A DNA stretch of 64,000 bases from Macrostomum lignano. Its lineage: Eukaryota. The first letter of the stretch is position 1; the number at the start of each line of letters is the position of its first letter. Under the pieces are notes generated by a model. It had not been told where the DNA came from. It was given only the letters and a program-made list of their open reading frames with translations, and made no database searches. Made by a program: the position numbers and the translations under genes. The DNA lies in assembly GCA_002269645.1 (NCBI GenBank), contig NIVC01003107.1:55045-119044 (forward strand), in the 5' to 3' direction. Positions 10,997 to 21,149 of the stretch are shown piece after piece.

Positions 10997-11299
10997 CAGT
11001 TTTTTTACTTGACACGACTTGACTTCGTCAATTGTACATGCAATTCTGTACTATGTTATGCTGTATTAATGCTTATAAAACCTTACTCTAATAGTAATAA
11101 ACACAAATTAATTGCGTCGTCAAAAGCAAACAAAATTCTGTTTTTTTCTGGCTGCTGCATTTAATAATTAATTGGTTTAATTGTCTCATTTTTGTCGATA
11201 ATTTTTCAACCGCTTATTAGCTGGCGAGGCTTAAATTTCTCCGGCCGTTTACCCGAAAAAATCTAATTTCAGAAAAGTCTACTATTATTGAATTTGATA

Positions 11300-12972
11300 A
11301 TGGCATCGAATGAGGCAGACGGTTCTGTTCGCTGCTTCTACGATATTCTTCAGGTGGATCGTCAGGCCAGTCAAGCTGAGATTCGTACAGCTTATCACCG
11401 TCAGGCCCTGCGATGGCATCCGGATAAGCAACAGAATCGAGCCGATGCCGACAGTACTACTGCTGAGGATACTACTGATCAGTTTCGACAGATTCAACGA
11501 GCTTATGAAATACTGGGCGATCCTCGTACCAGAGCTCTGTATGATCAGCATAGAGAGGCCATACTGCGTCAGCGCGACACCCAGTGGGAGCCTGAGACCG
11601 ATTCTACTAACCCGTTCAACTACTTCCCACCTGGTTGCTATAGCAACTATGGCGACGGCCCGGGCGGCTTCTTTGACGTCTATGGCCGACTGTTTGACAA
11701 GTTGGCCGGCGAATTGAATTTGACTTTGCCTGGTGAGTCTTTTATTTGTCCGGGATTTTATAAGTTCCCAGGTCCCGATTTCTGCGGATTTCCTAATCCC
11801 GGTTCTAAAAGAGTTCCTGGTCCCGATTCTATAACAGGTCCTAGTCCCGATTCTATAAGAGTTCCTAGTCCCAATTCTATGATAGTTCCTAGTCCCGATT
11901 CTATAAGAGTTCCTGGTCCCGATTCTATGATGGTTCCTAGTCCCGATTCTATGATGGTTCCTAGTCCCGATTCTATAAGAGTTCCTGGTCCCGATTCTAA
12001 AAGAGTTCCTGGTCCCGATTCTATAACAGGTCCTAGTCCCGATTCTATAACAGGTCCTAGTCCCGATTCTATAACAGGTCCTAGTCCCGATTCTATAAGA
12101 GTTCCTGGTCCCGATTCTATGATAGTTCCTAGTCCCGATTCTATAACAGGTCCTAGTCCCGATTCTATAAGAGTTCCTGGTCCCGATTCTATGATAGTTC
12201 CTAGTCCCGATTCTATAATAGTTCCTAGTCCCGCTTCTTTAAGAGTTCCTAGTCCCGATACCATTAGTTCCCAAAATCCTTTTAACAAATCTCTAAAGTT
12301 TTATCCCAAAACATTTGCGATATCCCTGGCCCTAATCCCACAGAATTCGGCAAATCCAACTCCGACTACAAGTCGGTAGTGGCCGAGTTCTACTCCGCCT
12401 GGGAGGCCAGCCTGACTCAGCTGAGCAGTCAGCAGCAGCAGCAGCATCGCCGCTGTGAAGAGCTTCGCGTATTGCTCGCCTTTGTCAAAGCCTGGGATCC
12501 CCGAGTGTTCAACTGGCGAGTGCAGGCGGCCTCCCAACTAATTACCGGCTTAGCGGAGGAGGTTTTACAAGCGTCAGTTAGCCGGTCGGTTTTGGCCGGT
12601 TTGGCCGTCGGAGGCGGCGCTCTGCTAGGCGGCGCGTTGCTGCCTCGCGTCGGCAATTTCGGCCTGGCGTTTGGCGCTGCGTGCGCCGCCGTAGCCTACG
12701 CTGTTGCTAACCGAGGCGGCTTCGTGTCGCTGGCTGACGCCATTCGCTCGATGCCGCCCGAGAAGCGCACTCGTCTAGCCGAGCTCACCGCAGACGCTAT
12801 GCGCGATATGAACGCTATGGATTCGGCCACGTGGGCTTCTCTGATAGCAACAGATGCTCAGTTTAGAGCCAGGCTGCTACAGTTGGCTAGGAGATTTGCT
12901 TACGGACAGCAAACGGCTGATGAGGAAGCTGATGAGGCTAGGGAGGCTGAGCTACCCATTGGGACTCGTTGA
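11300..12972 (+). CDS. Chimeric J-domain protein: DNAJC21-like N-terminus fused to a C19orf12/Nazo-like C-terminal domain; exons 11300-11732, 12344-12972 (353 aa)
   Basis: J-domain with RWHPDK. Exon 2 starts EFGKSNSDYKSVVAEFYSAWE and contains ELRVLLAFVKAWDPRV (DNAJC21-like), then a Gly/Ala hydrophobic stretch and GGFVSLADAIRSMPPEKRTRL, which aligns by eye to C19orf12. Confidence 0.8.
11770..12270. repeat. 24-bp minisatellite (AGAGTTCCTAGTCCCGATTCTATA)n in the intron of the chimeric DnaJ gene
   Basis: Tandem units visible directly. Confidence 0.95.
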
Positions 12973-13349
12973 TTTGAGATACAACTATTGTGCATTTTTA
13001 ATTCTGGTATATATTCCGAACTACATATAGTTCAATGATTTAGTGCTGATTAAGAATGTTTTATGCCATGGATTTCTCTTACAGACCCGTTGAATTTTAA
13101 ATATATTTTCCTGAAAAATATGATTAAAATTTGTGTACTTATATTTTGGCGCTTGTTTTTTTGCCTGTGATTTGTCTGGTTTAACCTGATGAAGGAAGCT
13201 GAAGGTTAGAGTCGGTAGCCTGATGAAGGAAGCTGAAGGTTAGATTCGGAAGTCTTAGGAAGGTTTGAGTTGGTAGCTTGATGAAGGAAGCTGAACTATG
13301 GATTATCTTCATATCTCAACGCACTGTACTGCATGCGGCAGCGGCCTCG

Positions 13350-16046
13350 ATGACCTCAGTCGAACAGCAGCACCAGAGAGCCGGCGGAGTCCGCTGCTAC
13401 TACGAACTGCTGGAGGTGGAGCGCCAGGCCACCGACGATGAGCTGAAGAAGGCCTACAGGCGGCTGGCGCTTCGCTGGCATCCGGACAAGAACCCGGACA
13501 GGGTGGAGGAGGCCACCGCCCACTTCCGACTGGTGCAGAAGGCCTACGAGACTCTGTCCGATCCGCAGGAGCGGGCCTGGTACGACAAGCACCGCGAGCG
13601 GATCTTGAAAGGCGGCCTCGGCCGCGGCGACGCCTATCAGGAGGAGCGTCTGGACGTCTTTCAATTCTTCACCTCCGCCTGCTACGACGACTACGATGAC
13701 GGCGAGGAAGGATACTTCACTGTGTACGCCCGGGTGTTCAGCGATCTGGCCGAGGAGGAGCGGCGGGCCTGCGACGGAGACGACGAACCGCCGCCTGACT
13801 TTCCAGGTTGGAGGCTGTTGATGGCTAACCAGGTGTCACCGTTGACCTTCCAGATCCTCAGCTGCTGGGCCAGCCTCCCAGATCCTCAGTTGCTGGACCA
13901 GCCTCCCAGATCCTCAGTTGCTGGGCCAGCCTCCCAGATCCTCAGCTGCTGGGCCAGCCTCCCAGATCCTCAGCTGCTGGGCCAGCCTCCCAGATCTTCA
14001 GTTGCTGGGCCAGCCTCCCAGATCCACAGTTGCTGGGTCACCAGCCTCCCAGATCCTCAGTTGCTGGACCAGCCTCCCAGATCCTCAGTTGCTGTACCAG
14101 TCTCCCAGATCCTCAGCTGCTGGGCCAGCCTCCCAGATCCTCAGCTGCTGGGCCAGCCTCCCAGATCCTCAGTTGCTGGGCCAGCCTCCCAGATCCACAG
14201 TTGCTGGGTCACCAGCCTCCCAGATCCTCAGTTGCTGGGCCAGCCTCTCAGATCCTCAGTTGCTGGGCCAGCCTCCCAGATCCTCAGCTGCTGGGCCAGC
14301 CTCCCAGATCCTCAGCTGCTGGGCCAGCCTCCCAGATCCTCAGCTGCTGGGCCAGCCTCCCAGATCCTCAGCTGCTGGGCCAGCCTCCCAGATCCTCAGC
14401 TGCTGGGCCAGCCTCCCAGATCCTCAGTTGCTTGGCCAGCCTCCCAGATCCCCAGTTGCCGCACCCCCAAGTCCATGCAGCATGGGATTAGCTAGGATCC
14501 ATAAGCACTATTATCGCATTCAACTTCCCTGCCATTCCGCACAGAGTTTGGCCGCTCCGACTCCCCATACGACACGGTGGTCAGGCCGTTCTACGCGCAC
14601 TGGGAGACCTTCTTCACGCGCAAGTCCTACGTGTGGGTGGAGAAATACGACACCAGGGAGGCGCCAAACAAGTACGCCAGGAAGGCCATGGAGAAGGAGA
14701 ATCGCGCAGCCAGAGACGCCGCCCGTCGAGAGCGCAACGAAGAGATTCGAACTCTGGTTGCTTTCGTTAAAAAGCGCGATCCTCGGTGCGCGCCGAACGG
14801 CGCCGATTAGAGGCGCGCGCGCGCGAAGTCGAAGCCAAAGCGAAAGCGATGGCCTCGGCGGCTAGGAAGGCCCACCTGGAGACCGCCAGCCGGTACAGGG
14901 CGCCCGACTGGGCCAGGACTGACGACCTCGAGGCCGAGCTGGCCAAGATCGAAGCCGAGCACGGGGCCGGCGCCTCCGATCTAGACGATGACGGAGACTG
15001 GGAGGATCAGGAAGATGGCGGCGAAGAAGGCGCTGGGGTGATCAATGGAGCTGTAGGTGCTGCCGAGTGTGATGAAGCTGAGGAAGCGGATGAGGATGAT
15101 GCTGAGGATGCGCTGGTGTGCGTTGTTTGCGAGAAGGTGAGCTCAAAGTCTGAAGTTTTCCTTATGGCTAATGACTTTCTCAATCAGCTCTGACTCTTTC
15201 TCGATCAGCTCTGACTCTTTCTCGATCAGCTCTGACTCTTTCTTGATCAGCTCTGACTCTTTCTCAATCAGCTCTGACTCTTTCTTGATCAGCTCTGACT
15301 CTTCCTCGATTGTTTCTGACTCTATCAATCGACTCTGTCTGACCCTGACAGTCCCACTTTCTCTGACTCTCTGATGACGCAACGCTGCCCTCTGCATCGC
15401 TGCATCCAGCCACCCCTCCTCACCATCGCAGGCATTCCGCACCCCAGGCGCCAAGCAGAGCCACGATCGATCCAAGCGGCACAGAGAGCGACTCGAGCTG
15501 CTCAAACTTGAGTTAGCAAAGCACGATGCCCAGCCAGTAGAAAAAGATCCAGCAGCAGCAGACAATGACTCTTTAGACAATGATGAAGACGTACAGCTGG
15601 AAGCGGAAGTCCAGCAGGTCTCTGGCGGCAAGAAAAAGAAGAGCAAAAGAAAGCAACAGCAGCGCCAGCAGCTACAGGCTCAGCTAGGAGAAAATGAGGA
15701 ACCATCAGATAATCCAAATGCAAATTCTGCGGCAGCAAAACCAGCGGAAGATGCTGCGGAAGCTTCCGATGATGAAGCGGCGGCAGCAGTAACGCCGGAA
15801 ACTTCAAAGAAGCCGCGCCGACGGAAGGATCGCCAACGGCAGAAGCAGCAGGAGCTGCTTGAACAGAAACGTCAGGAACAGTTGGAAGAGGAGGCTGACG
15901 GGACCACCCAAGTGTGCAAAACCTACAGGCAGTGGTTCGATTCTAAGAATCAGCTGTTCAAGCATTTGAAGGAGAGCGGCCACGCCGCTATCAAGCCTGG
16001 GGCGGCGGCCGGACGGACTGACGGCAAGAAATCGAAGCGAAAGTAG
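13350..16046 (+). CDS. DNAJC21: DnaJ homolog subfamily C member 21 (Jjj1 orthologue); exons 13350-13806, 14545-15136, 15432-16046, with a frameshift (one base missing) at ~14785
   Basis: J-domain (RWHPDKNP), [33 protein letters not shown]...RKAMEKEN, C2H2 finger CVVCEK|[18 protein letters not shown]-terminal [17 protein letters not shown]. Confidence 0.93.
13850..14460 (+). repeat. 28-bp minisatellite (GCTGGGCCAGCCTCCCAGATCCTCAGTT)n in DNAJC21 intron 1
   Basis: Tandem units; the same family occurs inverted at 46285-46810 and 48980-49105. Confidence 0.95.
15180..15315. repeat. 21-bp minisatellite (TCAGCTCTGACTCTTTCTCGA)n in DNAJC21 intron 2
   Basis: About 6 tandem units. Confidence 0.9.
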
Positions 16047-16204: not shown

Positions 16205-18345
16205 TAGACCTTAGTGACCATAGACAAAACTGTCACACAGCACGGTCACCTTGGTGACCATAGACAAGACTGTCACACAGCACGGTCACCTTGGTGATCA
16301 GAGACAAAACTGTCACACAGCACGGTCACCTTGGTGACCCTAGACAAGACTGTCACACAGCACGGTCACTTTGGTGACCCTAGACAAGACTATCACACAG
16401 CACGGTCACCTTGGTAACCATAGACAAGACTGTCACACAGCACGGTCACCTTGGTGACCATAGACAAGACTGTCACACAGCACGTTCACCTTGGTGACCC
16501 TAGACAAGACTGTCACACAGCACGTTCACCTTGGGGACCATAGACAAGACTGTCACACAGCACGGTCACCTTGGTGACCATAGACAAGACTGTCACACAG
16601 CACGGTCACCTTGGTGACCATAGACAAGACTGTCACACAGCACGGTCACCTTGGTAACCATAGACAAGACTGTCACACAGCACGGTCACCTTGGTAACCA
16701 TAGACAAGACTGTCACACAGCACGGTCACCTTGGTAACCATAGACAAGACTGTCACACAGCACGGTCACCTTGGTGACCATAGACAAGACTGTCACACAG
16801 CACGTTCACCTTGGTAACCATAGACAAGACTGTCACACAGCACGGTCACCTTGGTGACCATAGACAAAACTGTCACACAGCACGGTCACCTTGGTGACCA
16901 TAGACAAGACTGTCACACAGCACGGTCACCTTGGTAACCATAGACAAGACTGTCACACAGCACGGTCACCTTGGTGACCATAGACAAAACTGTCACACAG
17001 CACGGTCACTTTGGTAACCATAGACAAGACTGTCACACAGCACGGTCACCTTGGTGACCATAGACAAAACTGTCACACAGCACGGTCACCTTGGTGACCA
17101 TAGACAAAACTGTCACACAGCACGGTCACCTTGGTGACCATAGACAAAACTGTCACACAGCACGGTCACCTTGGTGACCATAGACAAAACTGTCACACAG
17201 CACGGTCACCTTGGTGACCATAGACAAAACTGTCACACAGCACGGTCACCTTGGTGACCATAGACAAGACTGTCACACAGCACGGTCACCTTGGTGACCA
17301 GAGACAAAACTGTCACACAGCACGGTCACCTTGGTGACCCTAGACAAGACTGTCACACAGCACGGTCACTTTAGTGACCCTAGACAAGACTGTCACACAG
17401 CACGTTCACCTTGGTGACCCTAGACAAGACTATCACACAGCACGGTCACCTTGGTAACCATAGACAAGACTGTCACACAGCACGGTCATCTTGGTGACCA
17501 TAGACAAAACTGTCACATAGCACGGTCACCTTGGTGACCATAGACAAGACTGTCACACAGCACGTTCACCTTGGTGACCCTAGACAAGACTGTCACACAG
17601 CACGTTCACCTTGGTGACCCTAGACAAGACTGTCACACAGCACGTTCACCTTGGTGACCATAGACAAGACTGTCACACAGCACGGTCACCTTGGTGACCA
17701 TAGACAAGACTGTCACACAGCACGGTCACCTTGGTAACCATAGACAAGACTTTCACACAGCACGGTCACCTTGGTAACCATAGACAAGACTGTCACACAG
17801 CACGGTCACCTTGGTGACCATAGACAAGACTGTCACACAGCACGGTCACCTTGGTAACCAAAGACAAGACTGTCACACAGCACGTTCACCTTGGTGACCA
17901 TAGACAAAACTGTCACACAGCACGTTCACCTTGGTGACCATAGACAAGACTGTCACACAGCACGGTCACCTTGGTGACCATAGACAAGACTGTCACACAG
18001 CACGGTCACCTTGGTGACCATAGACAAGACTATCACACAGCACGGTCACCTTGGTGACCATAGACAAGACTGTCACACAGCACGGTCACCTTGGTGACTT
18101 TAGACAAAACTGTCACACAGCACGGTCACTTTGGTGACCCTAGACAAGACTGTCACACAGCACGGTCACCTTGGTGACTTTAGACAAAACTGTCACACAG
18201 CACGGTCACCTTGGTGACCATAGACAAAACTGTCACACAGCACGGTCACCTTGGTGACCATAGACAAAACTGTCACACAGCACGGTCACCTTGGTGACCA
18301 TAGACAAAACTGTCACAGCACGGTCATCTTGGTGGCCCTAGACAA
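16205..18345. repeat. 40-bp minisatellite (CACGGTCACCTTGGTGACCATAGACAAGACTGTCACACAG)n, about 53 copies, each with an internal palindrome
   Basis: Exact 40-bp register; GGTCACC-TT-GGTGACC inverted repeat in each unit; no spacers. Confidence 0.97.
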
Positions 18346-19104
18346 GTCTGTTACGCAATATTATCACCTGCACTGGTCACAGTGACAATACCACGATCAC
18401 AACTTTTTTTGGAAGGCTACCGAATATTGCTACTTGCAGTAGAGTAGTTTGGATTTAAAGATCAAAGTGATTAGCTTCACACTGCCGGTCTGGACGTACG
18501 TAGTTTTGCGTTGTTGGCATTCAAGGCCGGATGCTCTAAACGGGCAGCAGTTTTTAAGCCTCACGGGGTCACGCCAACACGCCTGACTCTGCTGAATATG
18601 CTGCTTTGATTTCTCTGCGAGCGAGCCAAACATTTTTTTAGATCGTTCGATCAGCCGTTCGTCGAAAATTGGCCAATTATACTGGCGCTATAAAATATAG
18701 ATTTTTATAATAAAAATAACGGCCGGCATTAGCGGCTCACGAAACAGCTCTAGTCTTTTGCGTGCGAAAATATCATTTTTGTTGGATGATTTACTCTAGG
18801 CTAAGTGCAGTTGCACAAACAGAAGGTTGAGGATTTGGCCCCGTTGGCTGGTGGGTATCTGCAGCTGCCAGATTAACTGTAGCTGCTTTTAGACCAGAAT
18901 TCCAAGCTTTTGAATTGCTTGTGTAGTTTTTTAGTTGTACATAATAAATGTTCTGGATGGGCATAATTAATTAATTAATTAAGGCAAAATGATTGGTTAT
19001 ATTTCAGAAATTTTTCTTGGCCTTAGCTTGCCCATTAAGAATCCCTTTTAGCGTAATTCATCAAATCCATCCAATCACGTTGCAGAGACCCCGGTCTCTA
19101 ACTT

Positions 19105-20305
19105 TAGCGCCAAACGGATCTCTAAGCATGGCGCTAAACAGATCTCTAAGCATGGCGCTAAACAGATCTCTAAGCATGGCGCTAAACAGATCTCTAAGCA
19201 TGGCGCTAAACAGATCTCTAAGCATGGCGCTAAACAGATCTCTAAGCATGGCGCTAAACAGATCTCTAAGCATGGCGCTAAACAGATCTCTAAGCATGGC
19301 GCCAAACATATCTCTAAGCATGGCGCCAACCAGATCTCTAAGCATCGCGCCAAACAGAACTCTAAGCATGACGCCAAACAGATTTCTAATTGCAGCACCA
19401 AACAGATCTCTAAGCATGACGCCAAACAGATTTCTAATTGCAGCACCAAACAGATTTCTAAGCCTGGCGCTAACCAGATCTCTAAGCATGGCGCCAAACA
19501 GATCTCTACTCTTAGTGTGGCACCAAACAGATCTCTAAGTGGGGCCAACCAGATCTCTAAGCATGGCGCCAAACATATCTCTAAGCATGGCGCCAAACAG
19601 ATCTCTAAGCATGGCGCCAAACAGATCTCTAAGCATGGCGCCAACTAGATCTCTAAGCATCGCGCCAAACAGATCTCTAAGCATGGCGCCAAACAGATCT
19701 CTAAGCATGGCGCCAACTAGATCTCTAAGCATCGCGCCAAACAGATCTCTAAGCATGGCGCCAAACAGATCTCTAAGCATGGCGCCAACTAGATCTCTAA
19801 GCATCGCGCCAAACAGATCTCTAAGCATGACGCCAAACAGATTCTAATTGCAGCACCAAACAGATCTCTAAGCATAACGCCAAACAGATTATAATTGCAG
19901 CACCAAACAGATCTCTAAGTGGTGCCAACCAGCTCTAAGCATAGTGTCAAACAGATCTTGAGGCATGGCGCCAAACAGATCTCTAAGCCTGGCGCCAACC
20001 AGATCTCTAAGCATAGCGCCAAACAGATCTCTAAGCATGGCGCCAACCAGATCTCTAAGCATCGCGCCAAACAGATCTCTAAGCATGACGCCAAACAGAT
20101 TCTAATTGCAGCACCAAACAGATCTCTAAGCATGACGCCAAACCGATTATAATTGCAGCACCAAACAGATCTCTAAGCATGGGGCCAAACAGATTATAAT
20201 TGCAGCACCAAACAGATCTCTAAGCATGGGGCCAAACAGATTATAATTGCAGCACCAAACAGATCTCTAAGCATGGGGCCAAGCAGATCTCTAAACATGG
20301 GGCCA
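19105..20305. repeat. 24-bp minisatellite (GGCGCCAAACAGATCTCTAAGCAT)n
   Basis: Tandem units visible directly. Confidence 0.95.
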
Positions 20306-21149
20306 AGCAGATCAAGTAACGAATGCAAAGCACGAAATAATGCAGTAAACGTCTTATACTGCTATAATAATTCCTTATTGTTCAGCACTAACTGCCACTT
20401 CCAAAGTCGGGAAGAAATAATAATCAAATCGCTTCTCTACCAAACAACAAACTGAAAGTCCCGCAATCCCAGTTTCATTAGGTAGAATCTCTACTGATAA
20501 CGAGCAGTTTCACTTGATTGTCTCCGCTTCCTGCACGTGACGACGACAAAAGAATTTCTACAGATATTTAGTAGGGCTCTTGCGAACAAAGCTGACAGAT
20601 TAAAAAGGAGATCCCATGGTTCTAAAACAGAAAGCTGGAAGAAATGTGCCTGCATGTCTGCACCTGGGCTTGCTGTAAAATAAGATTGTGGCTATAGCGA
20701 TATAATAATGGCAGGGGGTGAGCATATTAGACATTATTGAGCTGTGTAGAGCTCAGCTTCATCTAGCTATCTTCTCCTGGCTTCCGTGCGCACCACATCT
20801 ATCCCTTGTCCTCCCTGTGCCTGCAGCCAACCAGCATTGAGGCGGCTCTCTACATCGCTGGGCACCAATGAAGATCAGAGAGAAGTGTTATTGAATCCTA
20901 TATCCCTCCCCTGCCTCTCATTCATGAACTTGATAGAAGCAGCCTTTGCTTTTGCGATTTCTGTTCGCAACTGCACCAAGAATAGCCAGAGTTGTTAAAG
21001 ACTGCCAACAATGAGATTACAGAACAGAAACTTGTACTTCAGCTGAGCATACATGTAAAGAAGGTAAGATTCTCCCACGCGTTCTCTGGGTTTAACAAGC
21101 TCAGAGTGACTGTCAGGGCAGACAATTTACTAAGAGGTGCAAGGAGAGT

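Follow-up and report, generated by a model that had tools for sequence, protein, structure and literature searches.

The question raised by this locus is whether a J-domain of the DNAJC21 type and a C19orf12-like membrane module are encoded as one chimeric protein in Macrostomum lignano and, if so, what such a protein might do. The locus lies in the final 64 kb (positions 55045-119044) of contig NIVC01003107.1 of assembly GCA_002269645.1 (Mlig_3_7). We refer to this whole stretch as the window, and unless a contig is named all coordinates below are window positions, with every feature on the forward strand. An initial annotation, made from the letters alone, had proposed an intact two-exon open reading frame (ORF) of 353 residues directly upstream of DNAJC21, and the exons translated exactly as claimed. 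Exon 1 (11300-11732) starts with the ATG at 11300 and covers codons 1-144 and the opening base of codon 145. The sole intron (11733-12343) is a phase-1 GT..AG intron, with donor G/GTGAGT at 11732/11733 and acceptor CACAG/AA at 12343/12344. Exon 2 (12344-12972) encodes residues 145-353 and the TGA stop (12970-12972), and contains, without any break in the frame, a DNAJC21-derived remnant followed by an entire C19orf12 module. The spliced coding sequence (CDS) is 1062 nt long. We read this gene, hereafter the fusion, as a real, transcribed, lineage-specific chimera of M. lignano, and we put above 0.9 the probability of the anatomy described here.

Transcript-derived data support this gene model. 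The GenBank protein PAA53278.1, which exon 1 matches, is identical over its residues 10-362 to the 353-residue fusion protein. It is deposited as 'hypothetical protein BOX15_Mlig015190g7, partial', and its single intron is spliced exactly as 11732/12344. RNA-seq and transcript assemblies were the only source of the Mlig_3_7 annotation, with ORFs called by TransDecoder (PMC5730564), and trans-splice and poly(A) sites mapped by experiment served as the points at which transcripts were cut (PMC5730564). Since PAA53278.1 was built from transcripts, it provides indirect RNA support for the 11732/12344 splice. The proposal that transcripts join the two parts of the protein was thus supported, the junction between them lying within a single exon and the deposited model splicing the intron as proposed.

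The PAA53278.1 model begins at 11273, with KSLLLLNLI preceding the Met. Directly 5′ of this first base of the transcript-derived CDS stands an acceptor-like TTTCAG (11266-11272), which is probably the spliced-leader trans-splice site of the fusion. Neighbouring genes are co-transcribed in M. lignano, and the polycistronic precursors are resolved by trans-splicing (PMC5730564). An ATTAAA at 13123-13128 is a candidate poly(A) signal of the fusion mRNA.

The fusion intron consists mostly of a 24-nt minisatellite (11790-12259, 19.6 copies). The unspliced frame is open across the entire intron, giving a 363-residue ORF (11288-12379), because the repeat unit is 24 nt long and free of stops; this open frame is probably fortuitous, a product of the repeat length. 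If the intron were retained, the transcript would code for the J-domain and then for a (V/G)PSPDSI-type repeat.

The N-terminal half: J-domain and DNAJC21 remnant

DNAJC21, Jjj1 in yeast, is a cytosolic J-domain co-chaperone of 60S maturation. The J-domain of the fusion (11336-11545, residues 13-82) matched Pfam PF00226 at 72.6 bits against a cut-off of 27.8 (E 2.8e-20, profile 2-63/63), and its HPD motif is present as H40-P41-D42 (11417-11425). A search of PDB sequences with the full-length fusion returned J-domains only (E down to 2e-12), with no solved relative of the C19orf12 module. Besides the N-terminal J-domain with HPD, the fusion resembles DNAJC21/Jjj1 beyond that domain, in GFFDVYGRLFDKLA, EFGxSxSxYxxVV, FYxxWE and LxAFVKxxDPRV. 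EFG..SDY..VV..FY..WE and ELRVLLAFVKAWDPRV of the fusion aligned to counterparts in the neighbouring DNAJC21, and in a four-way alignment the fusion tracked DNAJC21 through DPRV, at residue 199.

The gene structure and the database matches point the same way. The phase-1 intron is common to the fusion (11732/12344) and the neighbouring DNAJC21 (13806/14545), at the aligned position P/EFG. The best non-self full-length matches were DNAJC21-like, amphioxus DNAJC21 aligning at 35% identity over 54% of the query (E 1e-25), and tblastn with the amphioxus protein recovered both the fusion and the gene directly downstream. These two neighbours share 48% amino-acid identity over 188 codons. The J-domain with HPD, the motifs and the shared intron position had all been claimed from the letters, and the Pfam match and the alignment agreed with each. 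Judged by the similarity past the J-domain and by the common intron, the N-terminal half of the fusion is descended from DNAJC21.

Part of the ancestral protein is missing. DNAJC21/Jjj1 has a full zuotin-homology domain (ZHD), a charged region and both C2H2 zinc fingers, whereas the fusion lacks these. A degenerate ZHD remnant begins in exon 1 at about residue 125, occupies 12344-12507 of exon 2 and ends in ELRVLLAFVKAWDPRV. PF21884 matched it only partially, at 15.9 bits over positions 2-44/105 and under the cut-off of 25.1, compared with 54.4 bits over 2-105 in the neighbour. The core itself is gone, its place in the alignment being taken by a 27-column gap plus a degenerate stretch. A Pfam scan found no zinc-finger domain in the fusion, and both fingers are absent because nothing C-terminal to DPRV resembles DNAJC21. 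The absence of the ZHD core and of both fingers, read from the letters at the outset, was thereby confirmed. It is established for Jjj1 and Zuo1 that the ZHD binds the ribosome and that the zinc fingers bind partners; by analogy, a fusion without the ZHD core and the fingers has very probably lost the ribosome-related function of DNAJC21.

The switch from DNAJC21-like to C19orf12-like sequence comes after V199 (12505-12507), is complete within about 7 residues and lies inside the uninterrupted ORF of exon 2. The initial annotation had set it after DPRV at about 12507, and V199 is indeed the last DNAJC21-like residue. The earliest in-frame ATG of exon 2 is at residue 281, past the hydrophobic hairpin described below. 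In the absence of any earlier start codon in this exon, the C19orf12 module is translatable only as part of the fusion.

The C-terminal half: a C19orf12 module

Twenty-nine matches to the last 154 residues emerged from a phmmer search of 1.84 billion representative proteins. About two dozen of these are proteins of 137-160 residues, plus one tandem protein of 285 residues, and three are the fusion itself or garbled models of the same locus. The C19orf12-family matches (about 25) had E values of 4e-11 to 1e-3, the best non-self match aligning positions 11-125 of the query with 12-123 of 139. Those named in their sources as C19orf12 homologues come from spiders, a copepod and other animals, and Pfam recognised C19orf12 in 6/6 of the matches submitted to it (E 6e-13 to 6e-33). 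Two further candidates, a 3256-residue protein and a plectin, were considered as multi-repeat C19orf12 relatives and rejected as Ala/Ser/Gly-rich false positives, having no match to the family model.

A hidden Markov model (HMM) of 23 phmmer matches, with the query left out, scored the fusion at 88.7 bits over residues 206-331 (model 7-130/139); among 1000 shuffles that preserved composition, the highest score was 7.9 bits. Because these 23 members had been chosen by similarity to the query, we prepared another HMM from 18 members (vertebrate, insect and other), of which 12 show no similarity to the query that BLASTP can detect and six align with it at 17-24% identity. This model scored the fusion at 46.5 bits (E 2e-16, model 7-131/142), compared with 10.1 bits for the best of 1000 shuffles. 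The module alignment is collinear from the first residues to the end of C19orf12 proteins, with four glycines invariant. With HMM scores this far above those of the shuffles, we conclude from profile and alignment that the fusion C-terminus is a complete, though divergent, C19orf12 module (12526-12903, residues 206-331, envelope 201-339; delimited by phmmer, custom HMMs and alignments). An end-to-end alignment with C19orf12 had originally been drawn by eye, and both models reproduced it, over positions 7-131 of about 140.

The module has about 130 residues, the size of a whole C19orf12 protein. It shares with C19orf12 and its fly counterpart Nazo, collinearly over the full length, the N-terminal helix (LxxLAxEExL), the Gly-zipper hairpin, GxF, MxPxxxxxL and D..D..L..L. 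Its mean identity to the family is 26%, compared with 33% among the members themselves. Whereas C19orf12/Nazo is a stand-alone protein of about 140 residues, the module forms the C-terminal half of a 353-residue protein. It differs further in a three-residue turn insertion that brings an Arg, in three Gly-to-Ala changes and in an added acidic C-terminal tail (12904-12969), which is not found in other C19orf12 proteins and which contains a 12-nt in-frame indel between two genomic copies.

The glycine-rich hydrophobic hairpin (12589-12711, residues 227-267) was delimited by hydropathy, column mapping and AlphaFold2 (AF2) helices. Hydropathy gave two hydrophobic segments, 227-252 and 256-267, and six hairpin glycines are kept (G234, G240, G241, G248, G251 and G255). 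The usual Pro after G248 is Asn, a Pro being found three residues earlier, in the inserted PRV. AF2 placed helices at 219-243 and 245-266 of the full-length protein (predicted local distance difference test, pLDDT, 75-80) and at 25-44 and 49-67 of the C-terminal model, with a short turn between them. Foldseek with the C-terminal model found nothing in the PDB at E < 1.

Is the combination of these two halves found elsewhere? A profile search of 5.8 billion proteins gave 43 matches of 75-186 residues, all of them carrying the C19orf12 family PF20721 alone, and those with descriptive names were all called 'protein C19orf12 homolog'. No J-domain was found in any of the approximately 65 C19orf12-family proteins surveyed (phmmer plus profile matches), a database search with the full-length query found no other protein spanning both halves, and Joint Genome Institute (JGI) metagenome contigs contained no close relative of exon 2. 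A full-text literature search for C19orf12 together with J-domain returned unrelated papers only, and papers and supplements searched for the identifiers Mlig015190, Mlig022290 and Mlig020292 made no mention of the fusion or of the C19orf12 gene itself. Among the proteins surveyed, the J-domain plus C19orf12 architecture is thus confined to this gene. The statement that no such fusion had been described therefore held for the family members and for the literature, but the sequence itself already stands in public databases, as two 'hypothetical protein' entries in which the DnaJ domain alone is recognised. The novelty accordingly lies in the interpretation.

Two UniProt entries from another M. 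lignano gene set, A0A1I8FLB6 ('J domain-containing protein') and A0A1I8F438 ('Pre-mRNA-splicing factor SPF27'), were considered as larger fusions and rejected, being frameshifted models of the same locus that run BCAS2, the fusion and DNAJC21 together into chimeras. They could mislead searches by domain architecture.

Selection, proposed function and rival explanations

A syntenic second copy of the region (BCAS2, fusion and an intact 557-residue DNAJC21) lies on contig NIVC01002430.1 at approximately 95-96% nucleotide identity, and its fusion protein, PAA57946.1, is intact. Ten substitutions (5 synonymous, 5 non-synonymous) and two in-frame indels (3 and 12 nt) separate the two fusion CDSs. 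Their divergence is 0.96%, compared with 4% in the 5′ intergenic region and with 7.3% over all compared flanks and intron ends (Fisher p = 2e-13), the 3′ flank being perhaps partly misaligned. Between the fusion and the neighbouring DNAJC21, synonymous sites are saturated (proportion of synonymous differences, pS, 0.76; non-synonymous divergence, dN, 0.48) and no nucleotide similarity is detectable, while the 1059-nt frame is still open. Saturation and the lack of nucleotide similarity indicate that the duplication is old, and in a duplicate of such age the open frame has most likely been kept by selection. Taken together, the saturated parental divergence, the kept domain signatures and the low CDS divergence between copies most likely reflect purifying selection on the fusion. 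As to the indels, the 12-nt one falls in the acidic tail ADEEADEAREAE (12934-12948), and the 3-nt one adds a Glu in LAEE(E)VLQ.

J-domains bearing HPD stimulate the ATPase of Hsp70. We estimate at about 0.6 the probability that the fusion is a membrane-anchored, cytosol-facing Hsp70 recruiter, a reading in which localisation, topology, Hsp70 stimulation, clients and role are all predicted. An old DNAJC21 duplicate has retained the J-domain and part of the next helical region but not the ribosome-binding ZHD core or the zinc fingers. It is joined at DPRV to the whole of an intronless C19orf12 coding sequence, from within about 7 residues of that protein's start. The glycine-zipper hairpin would then anchor the product in the membranes to which C19orf12 belongs, that is, the endoplasmic reticulum (ER), the mitochondrial outer membrane, contact sites and lipid droplets. 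Indeed, C19orf12 proteins associate with the ER, mitochondria, contact sites and lipid droplets through their glycine-zipper hydrophobic region (PMC12384588), and one predicted model presented in the same review is a hairpin with both ends in the cytosol (PMC12384588). A hairpin of this kind, with both fusion termini cytosolic, would place the J-domain (HPD intact, no presequence) on the cytosolic face of the membrane. There it could stimulate ATP hydrolysis by cytosolic Hsp70 and load Hsp70 on clients at the membrane surface. The fusion may also pair with stand-alone C19orf12 via the glycine zipper.

Fly Nazo maintains Perilipin-2 and triglyceride stores (PMC10883546) and is an antiviral effector of the STING pathway (PMC12384588), and loss of mouse C19orf12 disturbs the tubular ER (PMC12619510). 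A link of the fusion to immunity is speculative.

Membrane-anchored cytosolic J-domain proteins include yeast Hlj1, mammalian DNAJB12 and DNAJB14, and lipid-anchored DNAJC5/CSP-alpha. These hold a J-domain at a membrane for local action of cytosolic Hsp70, the same logic as we propose for the fusion, and Hlj1 likewise has its J-domain at the N-terminus and its anchor at the C-terminus. In them, a plain transmembrane segment or a string of palmitoylated cysteines serves as anchor, whereas that of the fusion would be a complete C19orf12 module, with a hairpin and a soluble helical domain of its own. Outside the J-domain, these proteins are not known to be related in sequence to the fusion.

Several observations weigh against a membrane-anchored recruiter. 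The residues after DPRV matched the Pfam model of C19orf12, as the initial annotation had expected (PF20721, residues 216-321, profile 32-133/163, E 5.7e-4 to 9e-4), but the score of 19.5-20.2 bits is under the gathering cut-off of 30. In the second helix of the hairpin, alanines (A256, A259 and A260) take the place of three strongly conserved glycines, and Pro-Arg-Val is inserted in the turn, so that membrane behaviour may differ from that of canonical C19orf12. The structure models reach low to moderate confidence, with a pLDDT of 68.7 for the module and of 56.9 for the full-length protein, and we rejected the full-length model as too poor for use. The topology of C19orf12 is itself disputed, and a single-pass model would put the N-terminus, and hence the J-domain, inside the organelle (PMC12384588). 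Finally, the ratio of non-synonymous to synonymous divergence (dN/dS) between the copies is 0.31, which comes from 10 substitutions and is not significant alone (binomial p = 0.07), and the fusion is so far known from M. lignano only.

Some of these points would also fit an evolutionary by-product, a chimeric duplicate transcribed perhaps only through a co-transcribed, trans-spliced cluster and otherwise functionless and drifting. Both halves are long branches (48% identity of the N-terminal part to the neighbouring DNAJC21; mean identity of 26% versus 33% for the module), the ZHD is half destroyed, three conserved glycines are lost, dN/dS is not significantly below 1, and database, phmmer and JGI metagenome searches revealed no orthologue outside M. 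lignano. However, neutrality over such a time should, we infer, have yielded many stops and frameshifts, whereas the 353-codon frame, HPD, the 72.6-bit J-domain and the end-to-end C19orf12 profile match have survived saturated synonymous divergence. The copies, moreover, differ by in-frame indels only, with a CDS 4- to 7-fold less diverged than the flanks, and we therefore regard a drifting by-product as rather improbable. We also think it unlikely that the fusion is mainly a divergent C19orf12 paralogue or regulator, acting for example as a hetero-oligomer with stand-alone C19orf12, with a J-domain that recruits no Hsp70 or affects only the protein's own folding or turnover. Such a role would fit the retention of the whole C19orf12 module, the stand-alone C19orf12 encoded nearby, the proposal that glycine zippers drive homo- or hetero-multimerisation (PMC12384588) and a 7-residue insertion that follows HPD in the alignment with DNAJC21. 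But HPD and the signature residues of helices II and III are conserved despite saturation, which is hard to explain if Hsp70 contact is irrelevant. There is, lastly, very little room for an assembly or annotation artefact uniting parts of separate genes or mRNAs, even in an assembly that is redundant and carries erroneous or variant indels (within this contig, the neighbouring DNAJC21 is frameshifted by 1 nt), in a species whose polycistronic precursors are resolved by trans-splicing, and at a locus whose older UniProt models are garbled run-through fusions. The two parts meet within a single exon, in an uninterrupted ORF, the same architecture is found on two independent contigs, no start codon for a separate C19orf12 product occurs before residue 281, and the transcript-derived model joins both exons as proposed.

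The specificity of J-domain proteins stems from the part attached to the J-domain, and the attachment here, a whole C19orf12 protein, has not been described before. The fusion is a gene-fusion neogene and, with its anchoring predicted, would be a class-C, membrane-anchored J-protein; J-domain shuffling is common. [quoted passage not shown] For this orphan protein, a natural fusion kept for so long raises the hypothesis that C19orf12-bearing membranes are sites of Hsp70 action. An extension of the 'Rosetta-stone' kind, which we consider a long shot, would be that the fusion hard-wires an interaction that otherwise occurs in trans, C19orf12 proteins in general (human C19orf12 and Nazo included) working with cytosolic Hsp70 and J-proteins at ER, mitochondrial or lipid-droplet surfaces, where together they may, for instance, stabilise or remodel surface proteins. 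A literature search found no paper tying C19orf12 to Hsp70 or a J-protein; one paper does point out that neuroaxonal dystrophy results both from an Hspa8 mutation in rats and from mutations of C19ORF12 (PMC10880117). If this extension were true, the orphan MPAN protein would gain a molecular role tied to chaperones. The locus is also a clean case of new-gene origin: both parental-type genes persist no more than about 15 kb away, and in this genome neighbouring genes are co-transcribed and trans-spliced. With the gene known so far from one species, and with new class-C J-proteins unsurprising in themselves, its value is limited.

Neighbouring genes, origin and repeats

To place the fusion among its neighbours, we read the gene order of the contig, which on one strand runs RRM protein, stand-alone C19orf12, a 516-residue unknown protein, NDUFB10, an Arf-like GTPase, BCAS2, the fusion and DNAJC21. 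The fusion is thus flanked by intact representatives of both parental families, with the stand-alone C19orf12 upstream and DNAJC21 downstream. The former was found on the same contig as PAA53273.1, a protein of 142 residues (Pfam E 5.8e-33) encoded on the same strand by a single, intronless exon of 429 nt. It sits 1.7-2.1 kb upstream of the window start and about 13 kb upstream of the fusion ATG. The stand-alone gene and the captured module are both intronless. The stand-alone gene (g4) and the neoblast-enriched RRM gene Mlig022290.g3 have the transcriptional-unit prefix Mlig022290 in common. Within the window, tblastn and blastn found no further copies of the fusion or of either parent.

Could the two neighbours be the actual parents? 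A tandem duplication followed by domain capture, as the initial annotation had it, is plausible, with an intronless C19orf12 lying about 13 kb upstream, but both halves of the fusion are too diverged from their neighbours to prove a local origin. Specific derivation of the module from the neighbouring C19orf12 gained no support: the two share 28.8% identity, the neighbour was nearest in just 56/500 bootstrap resamples, and the module is not nearer to it than to arthropod C19orf12 proteins. A local duplication, then a deletion or read-through joining two adjacent genes, is a plausible route because the M. lignano genome co-transcribes neighbours.

The parental-type DNAJC21 was rebuilt from exons 13350-13806, 14545-15136 and 15432-16046. 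It has a J-domain (89.8 bits), a full ZHD (2-105/105) and two C2H2 fingers, CVVCEKAF..H..H among them, and is 55% identical to amphioxus DNAJC21. In the window this gene has a 1-nt deletion in a G run at about 14786 (14778-14790), where the sequence is CCTCGG-TGCGC, compared with CCTCGGGTGCGC in the syntenic contig NIVC01002430.1, and the frame is lost right after KKRDPR. As a result of this frameshift, GenBank annotates just a 300-residue C-terminal piece (14849-16046). Either the deletion is a true mutation that inactivates this copy, or long-read sequencing erred at a homopolymer.

The introns of the neighbouring DNAJC21 are, like that of the fusion, filled for the most part with minisatellites (13846-14459, 28 nt x 21.7 copies; 15175-15310, 21 nt x 6.5 copies). 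The minisatellites of all three paralogue introns are mutually unrelated; at about 46-49 kb of the window the 28-nt array is found again, inverted. Downstream of DNAJC21 lie two further tandem arrays, at 16208-18351 (40-nt unit x 53.7, 95% match) and at 19107-20313 (24-nt unit x 50.6).

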